Below, piece after piece: positions 846 to 23,534 of a DNA stretch of 64,000 bases. The stretch is from positions 1,021,692 through 1,085,691 of the forward strand of contig JAWQFM010000021.1 of NCBI GenBank assembly GCA_033442325.1. Direction: 5' to 3'. This stretch comes from Salpingoeca rosetta (taxonomy: Eukaryota > Protista > Choanoflagellata). The position numbers and the translations under genes are program-made. Numbering within the stretch: the stretch's first letter is position 1; each line of letters opens with the position of its first letter. The notes beneath the pieces are model-generated. The model searched no databases and was not told the origin of the DNA. It was given only the letters and a program-made list of their open reading frames with translations.

Positions 846-1150
846 GGTGATGATGATGCTGTTGCTGCTGCTGCTGTTGTGTCGCTGTTGTTGTCGCTGT
901 TGCTGGTGCTGGTGGTATCCAAGCAACTGTGCTCCTGCTGCTGTTCTGTGTACAGGCCACTGGTACAACTGCACGGCACGTCCCCTCTGCACTGCTCCTG
1001 CTGCTCCTGCTGCTGCTCCTGCTGTTGCTGTTCTCTTCACCACACCGCTTGTCGCCAATCGCCGCACAGCACCACGAACTGCCCTCTGCATCCAGTGCGC
1101 GCTTTGCTTCTTCCTCTTCTCTCTTCTCTCTTCTTCTCCTTTGTTGTTGC

Positions 1151-1162
1151 TTTGGCGGGAAA
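1151..1162. promoter_or_regulatory. E2F-type site TTTGGCGGGAAA in the divergent APE1/BRCA2 promoter
   Basis: Matches the E2F consensus TTTSSCGS on both strands. It lies in the 440 bp between the two divergent ATGs (845 and 1286). Confidence 0.65.
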
Positions 1163-1285
1163 CGCGCAAACCGCGCAAACACACACACACGAACGTGTTG
1201 CAACCCGTTCAAGCCAATACACAACAAACAGCAAACGATACAAGGCGCTGAGAGCAGCACCGACCAACCTAGCAGCGATTCAACG

Positions 1286-11324
<10,039 letters not shown>

Positions 11325-11835
11325 TTTGCGAACATCTTTTGAAGATCAAACATCCACACTCCTTTCCTTGATTTGCGTTCACCAATCTCTTTGTTTGCCC
11401 GTTGGCTTCGGTGTCCGCGTCAGTGTGCTGTGTGCTCTGCAGTATCACGGCTGTATGGCGGTACTGTCGCTCCGTTTACAGAGGCAGAATGGCGCGTGTT
11501 CAGCTACCGTCTTCGCCTCCTCATCTGCGGCCACCCCATCACGGTGAGGTCGCTGCGCTCGCTGCATGCACGACACCAATAAGAAATACGCAACCACGTG
11601 TGTGTCTGTCTGCTTAGTGGGCTGTTGCAAACTTCTGCTGGGCGCTCACATCACGTCCCGCGCGTTGTCGTTTTCGATGTGATATGACCGTTTCTTCGCG
11701 GACCAGGCCACGCTCGACACGACAACAGACCCCACAACACTGCAACTTCCGCCGCTCAACTAGCCAGCCCGTAATGGAACCAACTAAGCGAAGCAGTAAC
11801 AGAACAGAGGGAGGGAGGGAGGGAGAATGTAAGCG

Positions 11836-12287: not shown

Positions 12288-12368
<81 letters not shown>

Positions 12369-13152
12369 GTGTGTGTGTGTGTGTATGTGTCTGTGTATGT
12401 GTCTGTGTATGTGTGTGTATGTGTGTGTGTGTGTGCCCGATTCCTACAACTCACCACCTGCTTGCTTATTTTGGCTGGTTGTAGGTTGGAGCGCAAGCAG
12501 CGGCTGTCGATTGGTGCGCCCGTGACGGCGCTCACGATATCCCCAGACGACCGCTTTCTTGTTGTGGGTCTCAAGGATGGACGCATTGTTGTCGCCACGG
12601 TGAGGATGGCCGTGCGTTCTCGTTGTGTGCTTTGGTGACAGCGAGCGTCTGGGTTCGCTTGCCCTCACTCACTCACTCACTCACTCACTCACTCACTCAC
12701 TCATTCATTCATTCATTCATTCATTCACTCACTCGCACCAGCCCGTTGTGCGGGAGGAGCTGAGGGCGACGCGCGCGTCGTCGATTGGGGCGAAACCGGC
12801 GCTGCGGCTCATCTCCCGCACACTCAACACGGCCAAGACAGCAGCGGCAGGGCTGAAGAAGAAGAACAAGCACAAGAAAGGAAGAGGGCAACCAGGGAAG
12901 AGAGGGTCGCAGGAAAGGGAAAGTGGTGTGGAAGCTCTGCAGGAGGAAGAAGAAGAAGGGGTGGAGGAAGAGGAGGAAGAGGACTTAGTGGAGTTTGAAG
13001 AGGATGAGGAGGAGGAGGAAGTGGATGGAGAAGAAGAGGAAGAGGAAGTAAGTGGTGGTGGTGTTCGAGATATCGTGGTGGTGGAATCGAGGGGAAAAGG
13101 AAGCGAAGGTGAAAAGCAGCGTGAGCACCATGTGCCGGCATCAGACGTGTGA
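11836..13152 (+). CDS. WD40 C-terminal region resembling BEACH-domain (neurobeachin/LRBA-type) proteins, plus acidic tail; 5' end unresolved
   Basis: Exons ~11836-12290, 12485-12599 and 12742-13152 join in frame: SIALYSCNGELLA...HIAAMAWMVDGSHLLVAG...PVTALTISPDDRFLVVGLKDGRIVV. No BEACH domain is visible upstream. Confidence 0.6.
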
Positions 13153-13770: not shown

Positions 13771-16700
13771 ATGACCTCCCAGGAGCTGGAAACCAAGCTG
13801 GCGGCGATGTTCTGGCTTCACCAGGACGCTAAGGATGAGCTGCGATCCATCGCCAACAACACATGTGGACCAACCTTCAAGTGAGTCCTGCTGAAAATGT
13901 GAAGGGATAGCTGCTTGGTAGCTAGCAAGCGTTTATTTGGACGGGGAGCATGCATACAGTCACGGGTAATATTTACATTCGTGTTTGGTCGCTTGCTCAC
14001 CTCTTGTTCCTGCCGCCCATGCCCCATTTTATCACACCTCAATTTCTTCTCCTTCTTGGACCGCAGAGCGTAAGTCATAGCTGTTGAACTTGAGTGAGCA
14101 TGCATGTGCTGTAGCAACGAAATGTGAAGACGCGATAACGTTGTGGTGATGGTGAACAGTAATGTAATGCGACGCTCATGAGACAGTGTTGCTGTGTCCG
14201 CTCAACTGAATTGACGACTTGCGCAAATGAGGTTATGAGGTTCACAAGAAGAATCAAGTCTCGCGCTCACCGCCTCCTCTTGAACATTTCATTGACGACT
14301 GTGTGCCACACGTTGCATGTGCGCGATCATGGAACACGGTGCCGTGGACACATATGAAACCCGAACGACTCGTGCGCGCGCGTTGGGTGTGGAACGCGAC
14401 ATGACACAACATGACGTTGCGGCTGAATGCGCAACTACAACTTTGTTGCTGCGTGGAACGTGTGACTGAACAGCCCGTACGTTGACTCGCAGCCTGCATG
14501 TTGATGTTTGTATTGTGCTTGTCTGTTGTGTCCGTTGTGCATTGTGTTGTGCTGAGGAAGGTGATGGGAGTGTGTGGTATGTGTTTGTGTTGGTTGGTGT
14601 TGTTGTTGTGGTTGAGCGAGGTTTGTTTGCGCAATTGAGTGCTTGGGTGCATGTGTTGAGGACTCTGTTGGTGACAAGTGTTGTGAGTTTGCGTTGGGTG
14701 ACGGATGCTTGTAGCTGACCCGCTCACATACTCATATGCCTCACGCGCTCACACGAGAGTGTACTGTACTATTGTGGATGATGATGATGATGATGCGCTG
14801 CATACGTTTGGTTTGTGTGCTTTTTGTGTTTTGTTGCTCTTGGGAACCACCATTTGACATGACGTGGCATGGCATGACATGGCATGACGTTGCGGCTGAA
14901 TGCGCAACTACAACTTTGTTGCTGCGTGGAACGTGTGACTGAACAGCCTGTACGTTGACTCGCAGCCTGCACATGCGTTGATGTGTGTGTGTTGGTGTTT
15001 GTGTTGTGATTGTCTGTTGTGTCTGTTGTGATTGTGTGTTGTGCTGAGGAAGGTGATGGGAGTGTGTGTTCGTTTTTGGGATGGTTTGTGTTGTTGTTGT
15101 GGTTGAGCGAGGTTTGTTTGCGCAATTGAGTGCTTGGGTGCATGTGTTGTGGACTCTGTTGGGTGACAAGTGTTGTGAGTTTGCGTTGGGTGACGGATGC
15201 TTGTAGCTGACCCGCTCACACACTCATATACCTCACGCGCTCACACGAGAGTGTACTGTACTATTGTGGATGATGATGATGATGATGATGATGCGCTGCA
15301 TACGTTTGGTTTGTGTTGCTTTTTGTGTTTTGTTGCTGTTGGGAACCACCATTTGACATGACGTGGCATGACATGGCATGGCATGACGTTGCGGCTGAAT
15401 GCGCAACTACAACTTTGTTGCTGCGTGGAACGTGTGACTGAACAGCGCGTACGTTGACTCGCAGCCTGCACATGCGTTGATGTTTGTTGATGTTTGTGTT
15501 GTGATTGTCTGTTGTGTCCGTTGTGCATGGTGTTGTGCTGAGGAAGGTGATGGGAGTGTGTGGTATGTGTTTGTGTTGGTTTGTGTTGTTGTTGTTGTTG
15601 TGGTTGAGCGAGGTTTGTTTGCGCAATTGAGTGCTTGGGTGCATGTGTTGTGGACTCTGTTGGGTGACAAGTGTTGTGAGTTTGCGTTGGGTGACGGAGG
15701 CTTGTAGCTGACCCGCTCACACACTCATATGCCTCACGCGCTCACACGAGAGTGTACTGTACTATTGTGGATGATGATGATGATGATGCGCTGTATATGT
15801 TTGGTTTGTGTTGCTTTTTGTGTTTTGTTGCTGTTGGGAACCACCATTTGACATGACGTGGCATGACATGGCATGGCATGACGTTGCGGCTGAATGCGCA
15901 ACTACAACTTTGTTGCGTGGAACGTGTGACTGAACAGCCCGTACGTTGACTCGCAGCCTACACATGCGTTGATGTTTGTGTTGATGTTTGTGTTGTGATT
16001 GTCTGTTGTGTCCGTTGTGCATGGTGTTGTGCTGAGGAAGGTGATGGGAGTGTGTGGTGCGTGTTTGTGATGGTTGGTGTTGTTGTTGTGGTTGAGCGTG
16101 GTTTGTTTGCGCAATTGAGTGCTTGGGTGCATGTGTTGTGGACTCTGTTGGGTGACAAGTGTTGTGAGTTTGCGTTCGGTGACAGATGCTTACAGCTGAC
16201 CCGCTCACAGACTCATATGCCTCACGCGCTCACACGAGAGTGTACTGTACTATTGTGGATGATGATGATGATGATGCGCTGTATACGTTTGGTTTGTGTT
16301 GCTTTTTTGTGTTTTGTTGCTGTGGGAACCACCATTTGACATGACTTGGCATGGCGACGACATGACATGGCATGGCATGACGTTGCGGCTGAATGCGCAA
16401 CTACAACTTTGTTGCGTGGAACGTGTGACTGAACAGCGCGTACGTTGACCTCGCAGCCTGCACATGCGTTGATGTGTGTGTGTTGGTGTTTGTGTTGTGT
16501 TGTGTCCGTTGTGCATGGTGTTGTGCTGAGGAAGGTGATGGGAGTGTGTGGTATGTGTTTGTGTTGGTTTGTGTTGTTGTTGTTGTTGAGCGTGGTTTGT
16601 TTGCGCAATTGAGTGCTTGGGTGCATGTGTTGTGGACTCTGTTGGGTGTCAAGTGTTGTGAGTTTGCGTTGGGTGACGGATGCTTGTAGCTGACCCGCTC

Positions 16701-19700
16701 ACACACTCATATACTCACGCGCTCACACGAGAGTGTACTGTACTATTGTGGATGATGATGATGATGATGCGCTGCATACGTTTGGTTTGTGTTGCTTTTT
16801 GTGTTTTGTTGCTCTTGGGAACCACCATTTGACATGACATGACATGACACGACATGACGTGGCATGGCATGACGTTGCGACTGAATGCGCAACTACAACT
16901 TTGTTGCTGCGTGGAACGTGTCACTGAACAGCTTGTACGTTGACTCGCAGCCTGCACATGCGTAGATGTGTGTGTGTTGATGTCTGTGTTGTGATTGTCT
17001 GTTGTGTCCGTTGTGCATGGTGTTGTGCTGAGGAAGGTGATGGGAGTGTGTGGTGTGTTTTTGTGATGGTTTGTGTTGTTGTTGTGGTTGAGCGAGGTTT
17101 GTTTGCGCAATTGAGTGCTTGGGTGCATGTGTTGTGGACTCTGTTGGGTGACAAGTGTTGTGAGTTTGCGTTGGGTGACGGATGATTGTAGCTGACCCGC
17201 TCACACACTCATATGCCTCACGCGCTCACACGAGAGTGTACTGTACTATTGTGGATGATGATGATGATGATGATGATGCGCTGCATACGTTTGGTTTGTG
17301 TTGGTTTTTGGGTTTTGTTGCTGGTGGAAACCTCCATTTGAATGACGTGCCATGACATGGATGACATGGACGGTGCGGGCTGAATGCGCGACTACAACTT
17401 TGTTGCTGCGTGGAACGTGTGACTGAACAGCGAGTACGTTGACTCGCAGCCTGCACATGTGTTGATGTGTTTGTGTTGATGTGTGTGTTGTGATTGTCCG
17501 TTGTGATTGTCCGTTGTGCATGGTGTTGTGCTGAGGAAGGTGATGGGAGTGTGTGGTGTGTGTTTGTGATGGTTGGTGTTGTTGTTGTGGTTGAGCTAGT
17601 GCGTTTGTACCTTGCGCAATTGAGTGCTTGGGTGCATGTGTTGTGGACTCTGTTGGGTGTCAAGTGTTGTGAGTTTGCGTTCGGTGACAGATGCTTACAG
17701 CTGACCCGCTCACAGACTCATATGCCTCACGCGCTCACACGAGAGTGTACTGTACTATTGTGGATGATGATGATGATGATGCGCTGTATATGTTTGGTTT
17801 GTGTTGCTTTTTGTGTTTTGTTGCTGTTGGGAACCACCATTTGACATGACGTGGCATGACATGGCATGGCATGACGTTGCGGCTGAATGCGCAACTACAA
17901 CTTTGTTGCGTGGAACGTGTGACTGAACAGCCCGTACGTTGACTCGCAGCCTACACATGCGTTGATGTTTGTGTTGATGTTTGTGTTGTGATTGTCTGTT
18001 GTGTCCGTTGTGCATGGTGTTGTGCTGAGGAAGGTGATGGGAGTGTGTGGTGCGTGTTTGTGATGGTTGGTGTTGTTGTTGTGGTTGAGCGTGGTTTGTT
18101 TGCGCAATTGAGTGCTTGGGTGCATGTGTTGTGGACTCTGTTGGGTGGCAAGTGTTGTGAGTTTGCGTTGGGTGACGGATGATTGTAGCTGACCCGCTCA
18201 CACACTCATATGCCTCACGCGCTCACACGAGAGTGTACTGTACTATTGTGGATGATGATGATGATGATGCGCTGCATACGTTTTGTTTGTGTTGCTTTTT
18301 GTGTTTTGTTGCTCTTGGGAACCACCATTTGACATGACGTGGCATGGCATGACATGGCATGACGTTGCGGCTGAATGCGCAACTACAACTTTGTTGCTGC
18401 GTGGAACGTGTGACTGAAAAGCCTGTACGTTGACTCGCAGCCTGCACATGCGTTGATGTGTGTGTGTTGGTGTTTGTGTTGTGATTGTCTGTTGTGTCTG
18501 TTGTGATTGTGTGTTGTGCTGAGGAAGGTGATGGGAGTGTGTGGTGTGTGTTTGTGATGGTTGGTGTTGTTGTTGTGGTTGAGCGAGGTTTGTTTGCGCA
18601 ATTGAGTGCTTGGGTGCATGTGTTGTGGACTCTGTTGGGTGACAAGTGTTGTGAGTTTGCGTTGGGTGACGGAGGCTTGTAGCTGACCCGCTCACACACT
18701 CATATACTCACGCGCTCACACGAGAGTGTACTGTACTATTGTGGATGATGATGATGATGATGCGCTGCATACGTTTTGTTTGTGTCGCTTTTTGTGTTTT
18801 GTTGCTCTTGGGAACCACCATTTGACATGACATGGCATGGCATGACACGACGTGGCATGGCATGACGTTGCGGCTGAATGCGCAACTACAACTTTGTTGC
18901 GTGGAACGTGTGACTGAACAGTCGGTACGTTGACTCGCAGTCTGCACATGCGTTGATGTTTGTGTTGATGTTTGTGTTGTGATTGTCCGCTGTGTCCGTT
19001 GTGCATGGTGTTGTGCTGAGGAAGGTGATGGGAGTGTGGTGTGTGTTTGTGATGGTTTGTGTTGTTGTTGTGGTTGAGCGAGGTTTGTTTGCGCAATTGA
19101 GTGCTTGGGTGCATGTGTTGTGGACTCTGTTGGTGACAAGTGTTGTGAGTTTGCGTTGAGTGACGGATGCTTGTAGCTGACCCGCTCACACACTCATATG
19201 CCTCACGCGCTCACACGAGAGTGTACTGTACTATTGTGGATGATGATGGTGATGATGCGCTGCATACGTTTGGTTTCACGGTTGTTGTGTGACTTGTATG
19301 TAATATGTCCATCATTGTGCATTGCCTTTTGGCCTTTTGCAGTGACGCGTACATCGACGCCCTTGCTGTTGCTCTCAAGTCCAACCACTGCCTGCAGACC
19401 CTGGAGTACGTTTGCTCTGCCCCGTGCGCTTTCAGGCGCGACATATCGTGTTGCCATTGGCATTCTTCGGGGAATGTCACATCAACCATTTCTTCTCACA
19501 ATCTAATTCCTTGTTCCTCTCTCCTGCAGTTTGAGCCGATTCTGGATGACTGCCGACCGCGCCATCACCATCGCCAATGCGCTCGATCCCCATCGCAACA
19601 TCACCGTCAAGTTGTACGTTCAATGTCCTGTTTGATACGTGCAATGCAATTCGACACCCAACCCCGCGCAGCCGAGCGACTGCGTGACGATGTTGCTGCC

Positions 19701-21896
19701 TGACCCCACACCACTCTTGCCGTTTACCTCGATGCTGTTCTGTTAGTGACGGTGAAAACGAAGATGTGAGACACGCCTTTGACAAGCGCATGAACGAGCG
19801 CCGCCAGCAAAACACGCCGCAACCTTCCCACCCACTACACGCAGCAGTCGCTCCCCCGTCTTCGCCAGGCTCATCGGCCAAGCCTTCGGTGCGTTGTCGC
19901 TCTCCAGTTGAACCCGACCTGTATTGCTCTTCCATTGTGCCCACAAACTCACACGTTTCACGCATTCACCTTCAACATTGTATTCTCATACCAGTCGGAG
20001 ATTGCGCTCAAGAAGAAGCTTCAAGAGAAAAGTAAGCAGCCACCACTGTGCTTCTGTACACAGTTTCTCTGCGTCACCCTGTCTCATGTTTCCACGCCAC
20101 GCCACACGGTGTACCTGACATGACACAGATGCGGAACTCAGTGCGGTTCAACAAGCAAACGCAAAGCTGCAGCAGAACCTCGAGTCAGTCCAGCAGCAGC
20201 TGGCTTCCAAGACGTCCTCCCTCAACGATGCAGGTGAGTGGATGTGATTGCCAACGTCTCCACCGTGTCCTTCCCTCTCTCCGTCCTTTGTCCCGTGCTC
20301 CCCATTTCCTCTCACTACACCTTCCAACTCCCTCATCCGCCCCACCTTCAGATGCGCGCATCGCTGAGCTTGAGCAACAAGTTACTGCGTTGAGTGAAGC
20401 TCTCAGCAACTCTGAAGACATCGTCAAGCACTTTGGTAACGTTGTGCGTGACTGTTGACAGAGGGTGGTTTTTGCGGGGGTGGCTCGCTGCTCTCTTCTT
20501 GGTTTTCTCAGTTGCTTTCCTCCTCACTCCAACCCCATCCCTTCTTCTTGTGTGCCAGAATCGCATTCGCAACAGTTGGCACAGGAGAACGCCTTCTTCA
20601 AGACACGCGTAGAACTCAAGGACAACTGGGAAGAGCAGCTCGGTCAGTGCAGTTCTGTTGGTGGTGTTGATTGCACAACGTCCACTTTAGTACTTGCGTT
20701 GATTGTGCTTGAGATCTGCAACCCACACGGTTCTCGCCTTCATCAATTATCGTCTGCATACCACCTCTTACGTCTGCATACAGAGGGCGTGTTGAACCTG
20801 AACATCCCGTCGTCCCGTTTTGTGGGGAAAGTGCGAGTATTCGACATCAACGGCAAGCCCGTTGGTGGCGCCTTTGGTTCTCTCTTCAAGGCGGAGCTGG
20901 CAGGACAGCCGGTTGCTCTCAAGCAAATGCCCGTCCAGAATCGCCCTCGCCTCTCCGAAATCATCGCATGCGTTGCTGGGTCTGAGGACGTTCCAGACCA
21001 TTTGAAGCAGTTGCGACGCGAGGCGCTCATCCTGCTCTCCCTCCGTCATCCCAACATTGTGCACTTCCTTGGCCTCACCCACGATGAGCAGAGCCAGACG
21101 CTGGCCTTTGTGCTGAGCTGGGCCGAGAACGGGTCCCTCTACGACCTGTTGCACGTGAAGAAGCAGCTGCTTGACGAGCCAACTTGTCTTCGCGTTGCAT
21201 TTGAGGTGGCCTGTGCCATGGCGTTCCTTCACGCCCACAACGTCGTGCACCGCGACCTCAAGTCGCCCAACGTACTGCTGGACGCATCGCTCTCCGCCAA
21301 GGTGACGGACTTTGGCCTGAGCACCTTCAAGTCGGCAGACAAGTCCGTGCTGACACATGGTGGTGGCACACCGCTGTGGGCATCGCCCGAGCAGCTCTTG
21401 GAGGGACAGGAGCTCCGCATGGACACGGACGTGTTTTCCTTTGCTGTTCTGGTGTGGGAGCTGTTCCTCAACATCAAGCCCTGGTACCATGGCAAGTACG
21501 CTGCGCTGGGTGGCGCGAACATCTCCACAATTGCCAGAGCGTATGAGAAGGGCAGATACCTCCCGCTTGACGTTGAGGTTGATGGTCGCAGGCTGAGCGA
21601 TGCGGTGCAGCAGGTGCTTGGTCAGTGCTTTGACGTCAGCGGCAACCGACCATCGTTTGTTCAGCTGCAAGGCACGCTGGGTGGGCAGTACACAGCCGCC
21701 AAAGAACAGCACGCAGTCGATATGGAACAGCAACACGAGCAGCTGCACGGTCCTGCCAGTGCCGCGTGGAAGTGGCAGCCCAACGTCCTCGAACCACTGC
21801 AGTCGTTCATGGTGACTCATCCAACCCGCGCGTCAGTGCGCATTGCTGCGGTTGGCGCTGCCCACGACAAGGCCATCGCCATCGCCAATCAGGTGA

Positions 21897-21956
<60 letters not shown>

Positions 21957-22544
21957 ATTCGTGTGAAGCAATGGGTTGCTGCGACATGTTAATCACGCCC
22001 CTTCATCCCATCCCTTCATCACTCCCTTTCACACTCACCGGTCACCCACTCTTCTCTTGTCTCCCACCCCACAACCACACGACAGATGATCACGGAAGCT
22101 GGCGGCCGCTCAAGTGATGAAGCAAGACATGGTTTTGAAGGTCATACGCTGCGCTGGGTGGCGCGAACATCTCCACAATTGCCAGAGCGTATGAGAAGGG
22201 CAGATACCTCCCGCTTGACGTTGAGGTTGATGGTCGCAGGCTGAGCGATGCGGTGCAGCAGGTGCTTGGTCAGTGCTTTGACGTCAGCGGCAACCGACCA
22301 TCGTTTGTTCAGCTGCAAGGCACGCTGGGTGGGCAGTACACAGCCGCCAAAGAACAGCACGCAGTCGATATGGAACAGCAACACGAGCAGCTGCACGGTC
22401 CTGCCAGTGCCGCGTGGAAGTGGCAGCCCAACGTCCTCGAACCACTGCAGTCGTTCATGGTGACTCATCCAACCCGCGCGTCAGTGCGCATTGCTGCGGT
22501 TGGCGCTGCCCACGACAAGGCCATCGCCATCGCCAATCAGGTGA

Positions 22545-22604
<60 letters not shown>

Positions 22605-23534
22605 ATTCGTGTGAAGCAATGGGTTGCTGCGACATGTTAATCACGCCCCTTCATCCCATCCCTTCATCACTCCCTTTCACACTCACCGGTCACCCACTCT
22701 TCTCTTGTCTCCCACCCCACAACCACACGACAGATGATCACGGAAGCTGGCGGCCGCTCAAGTGATGAAGCAACAGCAGCTCCTCTGCAGCCCTTTGGCA
22801 AGACCGTTGCTGGTGTCGCTGTTGTGCAGTGCAGCCAGAAGAATGCTGCCTTCAACGGCGCCGTGCACCGCAACCAGACCCGTTATCGTGGTCACATGAG
22901 CAGCGCCAACCACCCGTTCCATCCCAAGTACCAGATGGGTCAGGCAACGGGTGCGCCCATCAACGCCGAGGAGGCTGCTGTCCTTGCTCGCGCCACCCTC
23001 CACCCTGCTGGCGCTTCATCGTACAAGGTGCTGGACCCGGCCATGATGCAGCCTGATGTGCATCTTCGCCTGCAGCGCGTGTTCCATGGCGTGCCGTCGT
23101 TTGCTGTGGCCATGAGCATCCTGGGCGGCGATTTCGCACAGCTGCAGAAGACTGACAATGGCTGGTACGGTGCTGGCTTCTACTTTACGCACGACCTCGA
23201 CTATGCTCTCGAGTACACGAAGAAGTGTAAGGATGTGCCGCCTGAGCTGCAGCACCTGAATTTGCCTGCAGGCAAGCAGTTCCGGGTGGTCCTGGTGTGT
23301 GACGTGCAGTATGGCAACCCATACCCAGTGCCGGACGCTGTCACCTTTAACGGCAAGCCGCTCGTTGGCGGACACGACGCCCATGTTGCCGTCGTCGATT
23401 TCAGCACCGGCAGCAAGGCTGACGCATTCCCCCTCGCACCCACAGAATGGGCCAGCAAGCGCACCGCCGCCGAGATTGTGATCAACGACCCGTCCTGTGT
23501 CCTCGTGCGCGGCATCCTCGTGTTTGAGGCCTGA
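13771..23534 (+). CDS. LRR - coiled coil - TKL Ser/Thr kinase - PARP-like ADP-ribosyltransferase protein (~872 aa without microexons)
   Basis: Phase-consistent GT-AG exons 13771-13880, 19343-19405, 19530-19613, 19747-19888, 19995-20031, 20129-20233, 20352-20435, 20559-20642, 20784-21892 and 22734-23534. RI-like LRRs (ALAVALKSNHCLQTLDL), heptad region, kinase motifs VALK, HRDLKSPN, DFG and GTPLWASPE, and ART motifs VFHG, GWYGAGFYF, ALEY, LVCDVQYGNPY and AEIVI. Confidence 0.85.
14067..14069 (+). other. Candidate 3-nt microexon (AGC) of the LRR-kinase-ART gene
   Basis: Pyrimidine tract ttcttctccttctt, then CGCAG|AGC|GTAAGT with a perfect donor. Inclusion preserves the frame. Confidence 0.6.
14398..19276 (+). 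repeat. ~495-bp tandem array, ~10 units, each containing a candidate 3-nt microexon AG|NNN|GTACGT
   Basis: Triplets at 14474 CCC, 14947 CCT, 15446 CGC, 15938 CCC, 16437 CGC, 16932 CTT, 17431 CGA, 17931 CCC, 18422 CCT and 18922 TCG (spacing 473-500). Units also carry (GAT)n and (CATGR)n microsatellites. Confidence 0.93.
21497..22773 (+). repeat. Direct 629-bp duplication (21497-22125 = 22145-22773) with a 19-bp filler
   Basis: The copies appear identical, including a (GT)24 tract; offset is 648. The filler GACATGGTTTTGAAGGTCA lies at 22126-22144. Confidence 0.92.

Follow-up and report, generated by a model that had tools for sequence, protein, structure and literature searches.

Candidate single-codon exons in a tandem array within the first intron of a Salpingoeca rosetta kinase gene

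The stretch of DNA analysed here (the window) comprises 64,000 nucleotides (nt) of the choanoflagellate Salpingoeca rosetta, at contig 21:1021692-1085691, and searches within the organism were made against its genome of 55.4 Mb. The element in question is a tandem repeat in the first intron of a protein kinase gene on the forward strand. Every unit of this repeat presents three nucleotides held between an AG and a GTACGT, an arrangement that resembles an acceptor, a one-codon exon and a donor. The interpretation that we prefer, with some reserve, is that intron 1 is a chain of ordinary-sized introns parted by single-codon exons of 3 nt, and that at least some of the array triplets enter the mRNA. 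A further triplet, AGC at 14067-14069, lies upstream of the array, and is probably a real microexon.

The array runs from 14410 to 19276 and has ten units of about 494 bp, each made up of an intron-like GTACGT...AG followed by 3 nt. Tandem Repeats Finder reports a period of 494 bp, with 9.6 copies and 92% matches, over 14499-19276, and from matches within the S. rosetta genome the array is judged to start at about 14410. A pattern scan locates ten exact copies of GTACGTTGAC, starting at 14477, 14950, 15449, 15941, 16440, 16935, 17434, 17934, 18425 and 18925. Upstream of each copy is ...gtgactgaacAG (...cgtggaacgtgtgactgaacAG) plus 3 nt, with unit 9 reading aaaAG. All ten units carry AG-NNN-GTACGT, and on the pattern scan and the splice-site scores the candidate microexons, all on the forward strand, are in order CCC (W1, 14474-14476), CCT (W2, 14947-14949), CGC (W3, 15446-15448), CCC (W4, 15938-15940), CGC (W5, 16437-16439), CTT (W6, 16932-16934), CGA (W7, 17431-17433), CCC (W8, 17931-17933), CCT (W9, 18422-18424) and TCG (W10, 18922-18924). 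The eleventh candidate, W0, is the AGC within CAG-AGC-GTAAGT at 14065-14075. It is preceded by a putative sub-intron 1a of 186 nt (13881-14066), which ends in a strong polypyrimidine tract and CAG, and is parted from the first array triplet by a putative sub-intron 1b of 404 nt (14070-14473) with a GTAAGT donor. The units, their triplets, the aaaAG of unit 9 and the AGC site had all been listed in a preliminary description of this locus, and the scan reproduces them exactly.

The spacing from AG to GT is exactly 3 nt at all eleven window sites and likewise at those of the paralogues described below. Recursive splice sites (ratchet points), which were considered as an alternative identity for the sites, are rejected, since their spacing would be 0 nt. 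A genome-wide search finds the repeat unit at two loci only, both on contig 21. An origin as introners or transposon-derived introns was also rejected: the unit is not dispersed, and matches outside the two contig 21 arrays are short, GT-rich and 72-77% identical.

The preliminary description had called the triplet hypervariable, and a test of each column of the unit bears this out for two of the three positions. For this purpose 19 units, from the window array and from that of an inverted paralogue (described below), were aligned, a tree of the units was built with the triplet masked, and parsimony changes were counted at each of 453 alignable columns. Triplet positions 2 and 3 each show eight changes on the unit tree, which makes them the top two of the 453 columns. 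The next highest columns have 6, 5, 5 and 5 changes, the mean is 0.43, and 346 columns have none. Position 1 of the triplet has a single change, which is the background rate. No column other than positions 2 and 3 shows all four bases. Decay of CpG was considered as a source of this variability and rejected: the ratio of observed to expected CpG is 0.85, and CpG transitions make up a minority of the changes.

The two variable bases would fall where a change alters the encoded residue. Exon 1 (13771-13880) starts with an ATG, encodes MTSQELETKL...CGPTF and ends 2 nt into a codon, at a GTGAGT donor at 13881. The junction is thus in phase 2, and an inserted triplet would have its bases 2 and 3 on codon positions 1 and 2; this holds in every paralogue examined. 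Since the inserts are 3 nt long the frame is kept, and no subset of the triplets, in any of the paralogues, yields a stop codon. Inclusion of W0 would convert ...F-N-D... to ...F-K-A-D....

Splice sites were scored with position weight matrices derived from 52 annotated introns of six members of the gene family, with 1318 decoy AGs for comparison. These training introns are 91-841 nt long, mostly 100-250 nt. The candidate sub-introns, at 186-497 nt, are within the real size range, whereas without splitting the intron would measure 5462 nt, some 6.5-fold the length of the longest one in the training set. W0 is the best supported of the eleven sites: its acceptor (14066) scores 12.3 bits, above 94% of the 52 real acceptors and equalled by none of the 1318 decoys, and its donor scores 6.8 bits. 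The array donors score 6.4-9.6 bits, the strongest being that of W10 (9.6 bits) and that of W1 being 6.9 bits, against a median of 7.0 bits for real donors, and are therefore within the normal range. The array acceptors are a different matter and are discussed below. A branch-point motif analysis of the 52 introns gave no clear consensus.

The comparison of paralogues, which are numerous in S. rosetta according to protein searches, carries much of the argument. One of them, the gene of XP_004991747, lies 57 kb from the window gene in inverted orientation, with an exon 1 that is 94% identical. The repeat is present in its first intron on the other strand, at contig 21:973901-978301, in at least nine units with the triplets CCC, CCT, CGA, CGC, CCT, CCT, CGA, CGA and CAA. 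A gap of 185 N lies within this array (L031 5101-5285, GL832973.1). Two more distant paralogues, L017 and L018, are on contig 23, L018 being the gene of XP_004989349. The first intron of L017 contains ...aaatAG-CGC-GTAAGTCA and has no second site. That of L018 contains ...cgcgcAG-ACC-GTAAGTCA together with a separate repeat of two units of about 300 bp, ...gacgacgcAG-GCG-GTAAGTGG and ...gacgacgcAG-GAT-GTAAGTGG. The two L018 units are identical over the 14 nt upstream of the triplet and at 164 of the 166 nt downstream, and their triplets differ at bases 2 and 3 only. The L018 acceptors score 3.4-4.5 bits, at about the 25-31st percentile of real acceptors, and the donors 7.2-9.2 bits.

An upstream site of the form AG-NNN-GTAAGTCA, the class to which W0 belongs, is thus common to all four paralogues, with AG-NNN-GTAAGT(CA) in intron 1 of each. 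In all, the AG-3nt-GT structure is intact at 9 of the 10 sites of the inverted paralogue, at the three sites of L018 and at the single site of L017, and it recurs across the four paralogues in three sequence contexts. Counted over the two strands of the genome, the motif AGNNNGTAAGT has 890 occurrences (about 8e-6 per nt) and its reversed control 3304. From this rate only about 0.005-0.009 sites per intron would be expected, and the occurrence of such a site in every paralogue is therefore far beyond chance. The spacing of the sites is also similar, the first and second being reached after 186 + 404 nt in the window gene and after 191 + 408 nt in L018. BLAST gives no alignment of the window and L018 introns. 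When aligned globally the intron segments are only 55-58% identical and z is 3.2-4.0, the controls having 1.4 and -0.5; sub-intron 1b retains a weak residual similarity to its 408-nt equivalent in L018 (z = 3.2, same controls). On the basis of these comparisons the AG-3nt-GT sites of intron 1 look like conserved splice-site pairs.

A fifth member of the family, P0004 (locus L027, GL832967.1), has an annotated microexon of 18 nt at the homologous junction (L027 3427-3444, TTCCAGCCAACTCAAAGC), behind a strong polypyrimidine acceptor. Its end, CTCAAAGC-GTAAGT, matches the join that W0 would make in the window gene, TTCAA + AGC-GTAAGT, and both encode ...K-A. The more distant loci L019-L026, which have sequences resembling exon 1, were set aside; their gene structure is different and they provide no information.

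The divergence between paralogues changes abruptly at the AGC site. Compared with the paralogue (L016, in reverse complement), positions 13881-14063 have 33 differences in 183 (18%), and positions 14064-14420 have 2 in 357. The step has the appearance of a boundary of gene conversion, in a tract by which the two arrays too are homogenised.

On the basis of these observations, we suggest the following history and mechanism. The ancestor of the four-gene subfamily would have possessed two codon-sized microexons, placed after exon 1 and ahead of the first leucine-rich repeat (LRR) exon. The first may persist as AGC at 14067-14069. The second, together with the intron downstream of it, would have been copied in tandem, ten times in the window gene, at least nine times in the inverted paralogue and twice in L018; L017 lacks it. 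Each unit would then be spliced out as an intron of its own of about 490 nt, leaving 3 nt behind, with triplet bases 2 and 3 on codon positions 1 and 2, and with the wobble position filled by base 1 of the triplet that follows. Each triplet included would add one residue (P, L, A, F, D, R or N) to the loop that leads from the strand of the first LRR to its helix. The weakness of the acceptors suggests that the array triplets would be included partly or variably.

The principal alternative is that the array is an inert minisatellite, lying within one long intron or, if AGC is a real microexon and the only one, within the intron after it. The AG-3nt-GTACGT motif would then be a relic or the product of chance, skipped by the spliceosome, and the two variable bases a mutational hotspot. 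An inert satellite was at the outset held to be much the most probable explanation, and it was the contig 23 paralogues L017 and L018 that moved the weighing away from it. It is still a substantial possibility, though it falls short of an even chance.

Several observations argue for an inert array and weigh against splicing of the triplets. The array acceptors are poor in pyrimidines and score only -2.5 to 3.7 bits, mostly 0.7-1.3 (W1 has 0.8 bits), which places them in the bottom 2-12% of real acceptors; the best of them, that of W6 (3.7 bits), is at about 25%, and the aaaAG of W9 is the weakest (-2.5 bits). Between 30 and 65% of decoy AGs score as high. The donor sequence is of limited value as evidence: the preliminary description had noted that GTACGT is shared with the two LRR exons downstream, and the sequence is indeed present there, but it is not specific, as each GT-rich unit holds five to six donor-like GTs, among which the donor matrix does not discriminate. 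By estimate, an AG-3nt-donor-like site would be expected by chance in about one in five such units (~20%). One unit of the inverted paralogue has TTACGT in place of GTACGT and so has lost its GT, and the acceptor reads AAG in four units. At the core AG and GTACGT positions 1 change is observed and about 3.4 are expected, which is no significant excess of conservation over the rest of the unit. Across the genome strong AG-N2-4-GTAAGT sites show no excess, a polypyrimidine tract plus CAG-N2/3/4-GTAAGT giving 9, 3 and 6 matches, no more than reversed controls; by this crude test, signatures of ultra-short exons do not form a trend of the genome at large. L017, as noted, has no second site.

The inserts are also not needed to make a sensible protein. 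Direct joins of exon 1 to exon 2 give the colinear sequences CGPTF-N-DAYIDAL, CGRHF-N-NDYIDAL and CGSSF-S-NHYIDAL, and joins that include the first microexon only are likewise colinear among paralogues. The preliminary description had argued that exon 2 is missing seven codons which the microexons would supply, and this argument falls, as the tail of exon 1 supplies them in three paralogues.

The RNA evidence was drawn from three stranded RNA-seq runs, together with one DNA-like contig set, at a likeness cut-off of 95%. The depth on the exons is only 2-4x, and among the joints listed none touches a triplet or joins exon 1 to exon 2, which is a further point against splicing of the triplets. 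The sole exon-exon joint among those listed is 19405>19530, carried by nine reads, which confirms the donor of exon 2. Read variants at 13810/13811, 19373, 19389, 19540, 19542 and 19559 are all paralogue alleles, and such alleles are carried by about 70-100% of the RNA-seq reads on exons 1-3. The window copy is weakly expressed in the three libraries, and the inverted paralogue is the expressed copy. The 3' half of exon 1 differs by more than 5% between the paralogue and the window, and junction reads from exon 1 to exon 2 therefore probably failed the cut-off. Given that the reads are few and mostly from the paralogue, the RNA neither shows nor excludes inclusion of the triplets. Apparent RNA pile-ups within the array, at 15584-15606 and 16572-16590, were rejected as signal, being cross-mapping of (GTT)n, and depth at 19100-19299 is probably cross-mapping of (GAT)n. 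Searches of protein databases find no cDNA-derived protein or open reading frame (ORF) that spans the junction, the S. rosetta entries in them coming only from genome annotation. The microexons are absent from the public gene models too, but these models start within the intron-1 repeats (see below) and are therefore uninformative on this point.

An inert array leaves several observations to be accounted for. It needs a hotspot that is limited to two bases, repeated in the different context of L018, and the CpG content reported above does not provide one. It does not explain why the second site is at the same distance (404 and 408 nt) in introns that can barely be aligned. Finally, it requires an intron of 5.3-5.5 kb in a family whose introns are 91-841 nt. 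Splicing of at least some triplets would account for the position and phase of the variable bases together with the sizes of the introns, and we retain it as the preferred interpretation, the preliminary description being in this respect partly supported by the comparison of sequences.

A second alternative is that the unit has a non-coding function, as an intronic small RNA (a C/D snoRNA), a structured RNA or a docking or selector element, with the triplet in a loop or guide region. Each unit does contain GATGATGA and CTGA motifs, and sense-strand RNA reads cover the array at low depth. Against this, a search with the Rfam gathering thresholds gives no match in the whole window, a permissive search gives only sR30 with E = 0.48, and no tRNA-like genes were found. 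Local folding at the triplet has no advantage in stability over shuffled sequences (z about -0.1 to +0.9), and a search of intron 1 for inverted repeats of at least 14 nt finds none. Relative to CTGA the triplet is on the downstream side, which is not the guide position of a snoRNA. We consider such a function very improbable. The combinatorial or mutually exclusive choice of exons proposed in the preliminary description, after the manner of Dscam, is likewise not borne out: no complementarity of the docking and selector kind was found in intron 1, and nothing points to combinatorial choice or to exclusivity. Artefacts of assembly or consensus errors in the triplets or the unit count, for which one may point to the gap in the paralogue array and to the fact that the locus is identical at every letter to GCA_000188695.1, with no second, independent assembly, can hardly be the explanation, as an Illumina-derived contig of a separate run (X1) covers 17403-17482, and hence the triplet of unit 7, without substitutions, that run reports no variants at any triplet, and the same triplet alleles are found in both arrays.

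The gene as a whole runs well beyond the array. The predicted protein XP_004991757 (P0001, 839 aa) maps exactly onto it, and the top matches of its kinase ORF in a protein search are annotated 'TKL protein kinase [Salpingoeca rosetta]'. Exon 1 is covered by sense-strand RNA reads, is conserved across the four paralogues and has a donor of 9.0 bits. Exon 2 (19343-19405, 63 nt, DAYIDALAVALKSNHCLQTL) encodes part of an RI-type LRR, is fixed by the exact mapping of P0001, and has its GTACGT donor at 19406. Exon 3 (19530-19613, 84 nt) encodes one LRR and has its GTACGT donor at 19614. The sizes and donors of these two exons, and the phase 2 junction, are as previously described. The exon map of the remainder (19747-23531, forward strand) comprises a coiled coil, a kinase exon at 20784-21892 and a PARP-like C-terminal exon at 22734-23531. 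Pfam identifies the kinase solidly (Pkinase, E = 3.6e-38). The C-terminus gives PARP with E = 0.0017, under the curated cut-off, and language-model (Atlas) features there fall in PARP clusters at 0.95-0.96; an AlphaFold model of the PARP-like domain has a mean pLDDT of 31 and is unusable. Residues 5-64 are assigned to LRR_6 by the Atlas features alone, Pfam finding no LRR there. It is reasonable to describe the protein as RI-type LRR, coiled coil, kinase and PARP-like, although support for its LRR and PARP-like parts is weak.

The public model of XP_004991757 lacks exon 1, and starts instead at an ad hoc ATG in the last repeat unit (19028-19038, 'MGVC'). The models of XP_004991747 (MRNYNFVAAWNV) and XP_004989349 (MRVIS) similarly omit exon 1 and start at ad hoc ATGs within intron-1 repeats (L031 7001-7035 and L033 1389-1402, respectively). 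The N-termini of all three models are probably wrong.

Elsewhere in the window, positions 21497-21960 and 22145-22608 are a perfect duplicate of 464 nt, with no mismatches and an offset of 648 bp. The duplicate takes in the last part of the kinase exon with its donor, and also a (GT)n tract, and the second copy is inside the 841-nt last intron of the public model. Either the tandem duplication happened very recently or the assembly is in error here. Upstream of the gene, positions 929-11371 form a single open frame of 3480 codons, rich in poly-Q, poly-D and low-complexity runs. Within it a segment of about 50 aa (FGGFMTAGNKSISISDEARRKGEALVN...) occurs three times in nearly identical form, and long (GT)n tracts at 11100-11340 and 12291-12435 flank the frame.

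A bolder interpretation goes beyond splicing. If as many as eleven single-codon exons were included to a variable extent, this might be a selected means by which a unicellular relative of the animals diversifies the ligand-facing loop of an LRR sensor, residue by residue. Exons multiplied in tandem would come under positive selection at codon positions 1 and 2, in an immune-like LRR-kinase-PARP family and with an origin independent of the truffle system discussed below. We regard this as speculative, and in its full form unlikely.

If the triplets are spliced, serial codon-sized exons would be known from two systems, the present one being the first that is not fungal; its host belongs to the sister group of the animals, and the gene to a family of receptor-like kinases. 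It would imply that a unit of one intron and one codon, by duplicating in tandem, can both lengthen and diversify a protein loop, and that splicing by intron definition tolerates chains of 3-nt exons. It would also mean that S. rosetta gene models miss such exons, and in the present case even the true first exon. If splicing is refuted, the array serves as a caution about exon-like repeats, and leaves a two-base mutational hotspot without an explanation.

There are several known systems to which the array may be compared. Single microexons of 3 nt have been described in cytohesin-1 (PMC6314551), in MAP4K5 (PMC8632122), in plants (PMC8831610) and in Drosophila (PMC8042270). The likeness lies in the arrangement of AG, 3 nt and GT, in the single in-frame residue, and in the ease with which such exons are missed by annotation and standard aligners. 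W0 is the site in the window that comes closest to the animal and plant examples. Those microexons are however lone and conserved in sequence, whereas here there are up to eleven in series, which are mostly variable.

As in Dscam1, alternative coding units would form a tandem array, born of duplication, in a receptor-like gene. The exons of Dscam1 are however full-sized and code for half a domain each, and the choice among them is enforced by docking and selector pairing, for which no complementarity was found here. A second comparison is with the repeats of immune receptors: the WD, ANK and TPR repeats of fungal NLRs, and LRR arrays, diversify by unequal crossing-over and positive selection (PMC4986451, PMC9815663). 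The array described here resembles them in its near-identical units, its few fast positions, a copy number that differs among paralogues, and homogenisation within and between arrays. In those receptors the unit is a whole protein repeat and is exonic, whereas here about 99% of the unit would be intron, with one codon coding. In the other direction, the array is like an intronic minisatellite in being a head-to-tail repeat of 494 bp, GT-rich, with embedded microsatellites and a variable copy number, and unlike one in that AG-3nt-GT is kept in position across diverged paralogues, with change focused on two in-frame bases.

The preliminary description had known of no equivalent, and in this it has to be corrected. 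In the truffle Tuber melanosporum, the NACHT-ANK (nank) genes are described as carrying 3-bp mini-exons by the tens, subject to alternative splicing (Iotti et al. 2012, Fungal Biol 116:261, as cited in PMC4986451, PMC3689799, PMC9815663 and PMC10197012). As these papers present it, the truffle system shares with the proposed one the many codon-sized exons in series in a single gene with the frame kept, an expanded and, in S. rosetta, putatively receptor-like family with a candidate recognition domain of the repeat type, and variation of the recognition region as the proposed outcome. Alternative splicing in the truffle is reported from transcripts, whereas the S. rosetta case is proposed from sequence comparison. 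The host here is a choanoflagellate and the protein an LRR, kinase and PARP-like one, not NACHT-ANK. What characterises the S. rosetta array is that a 494-bp unit of intron plus codon has been copied in tandem, with an excess of change at codon positions 1 and 2.

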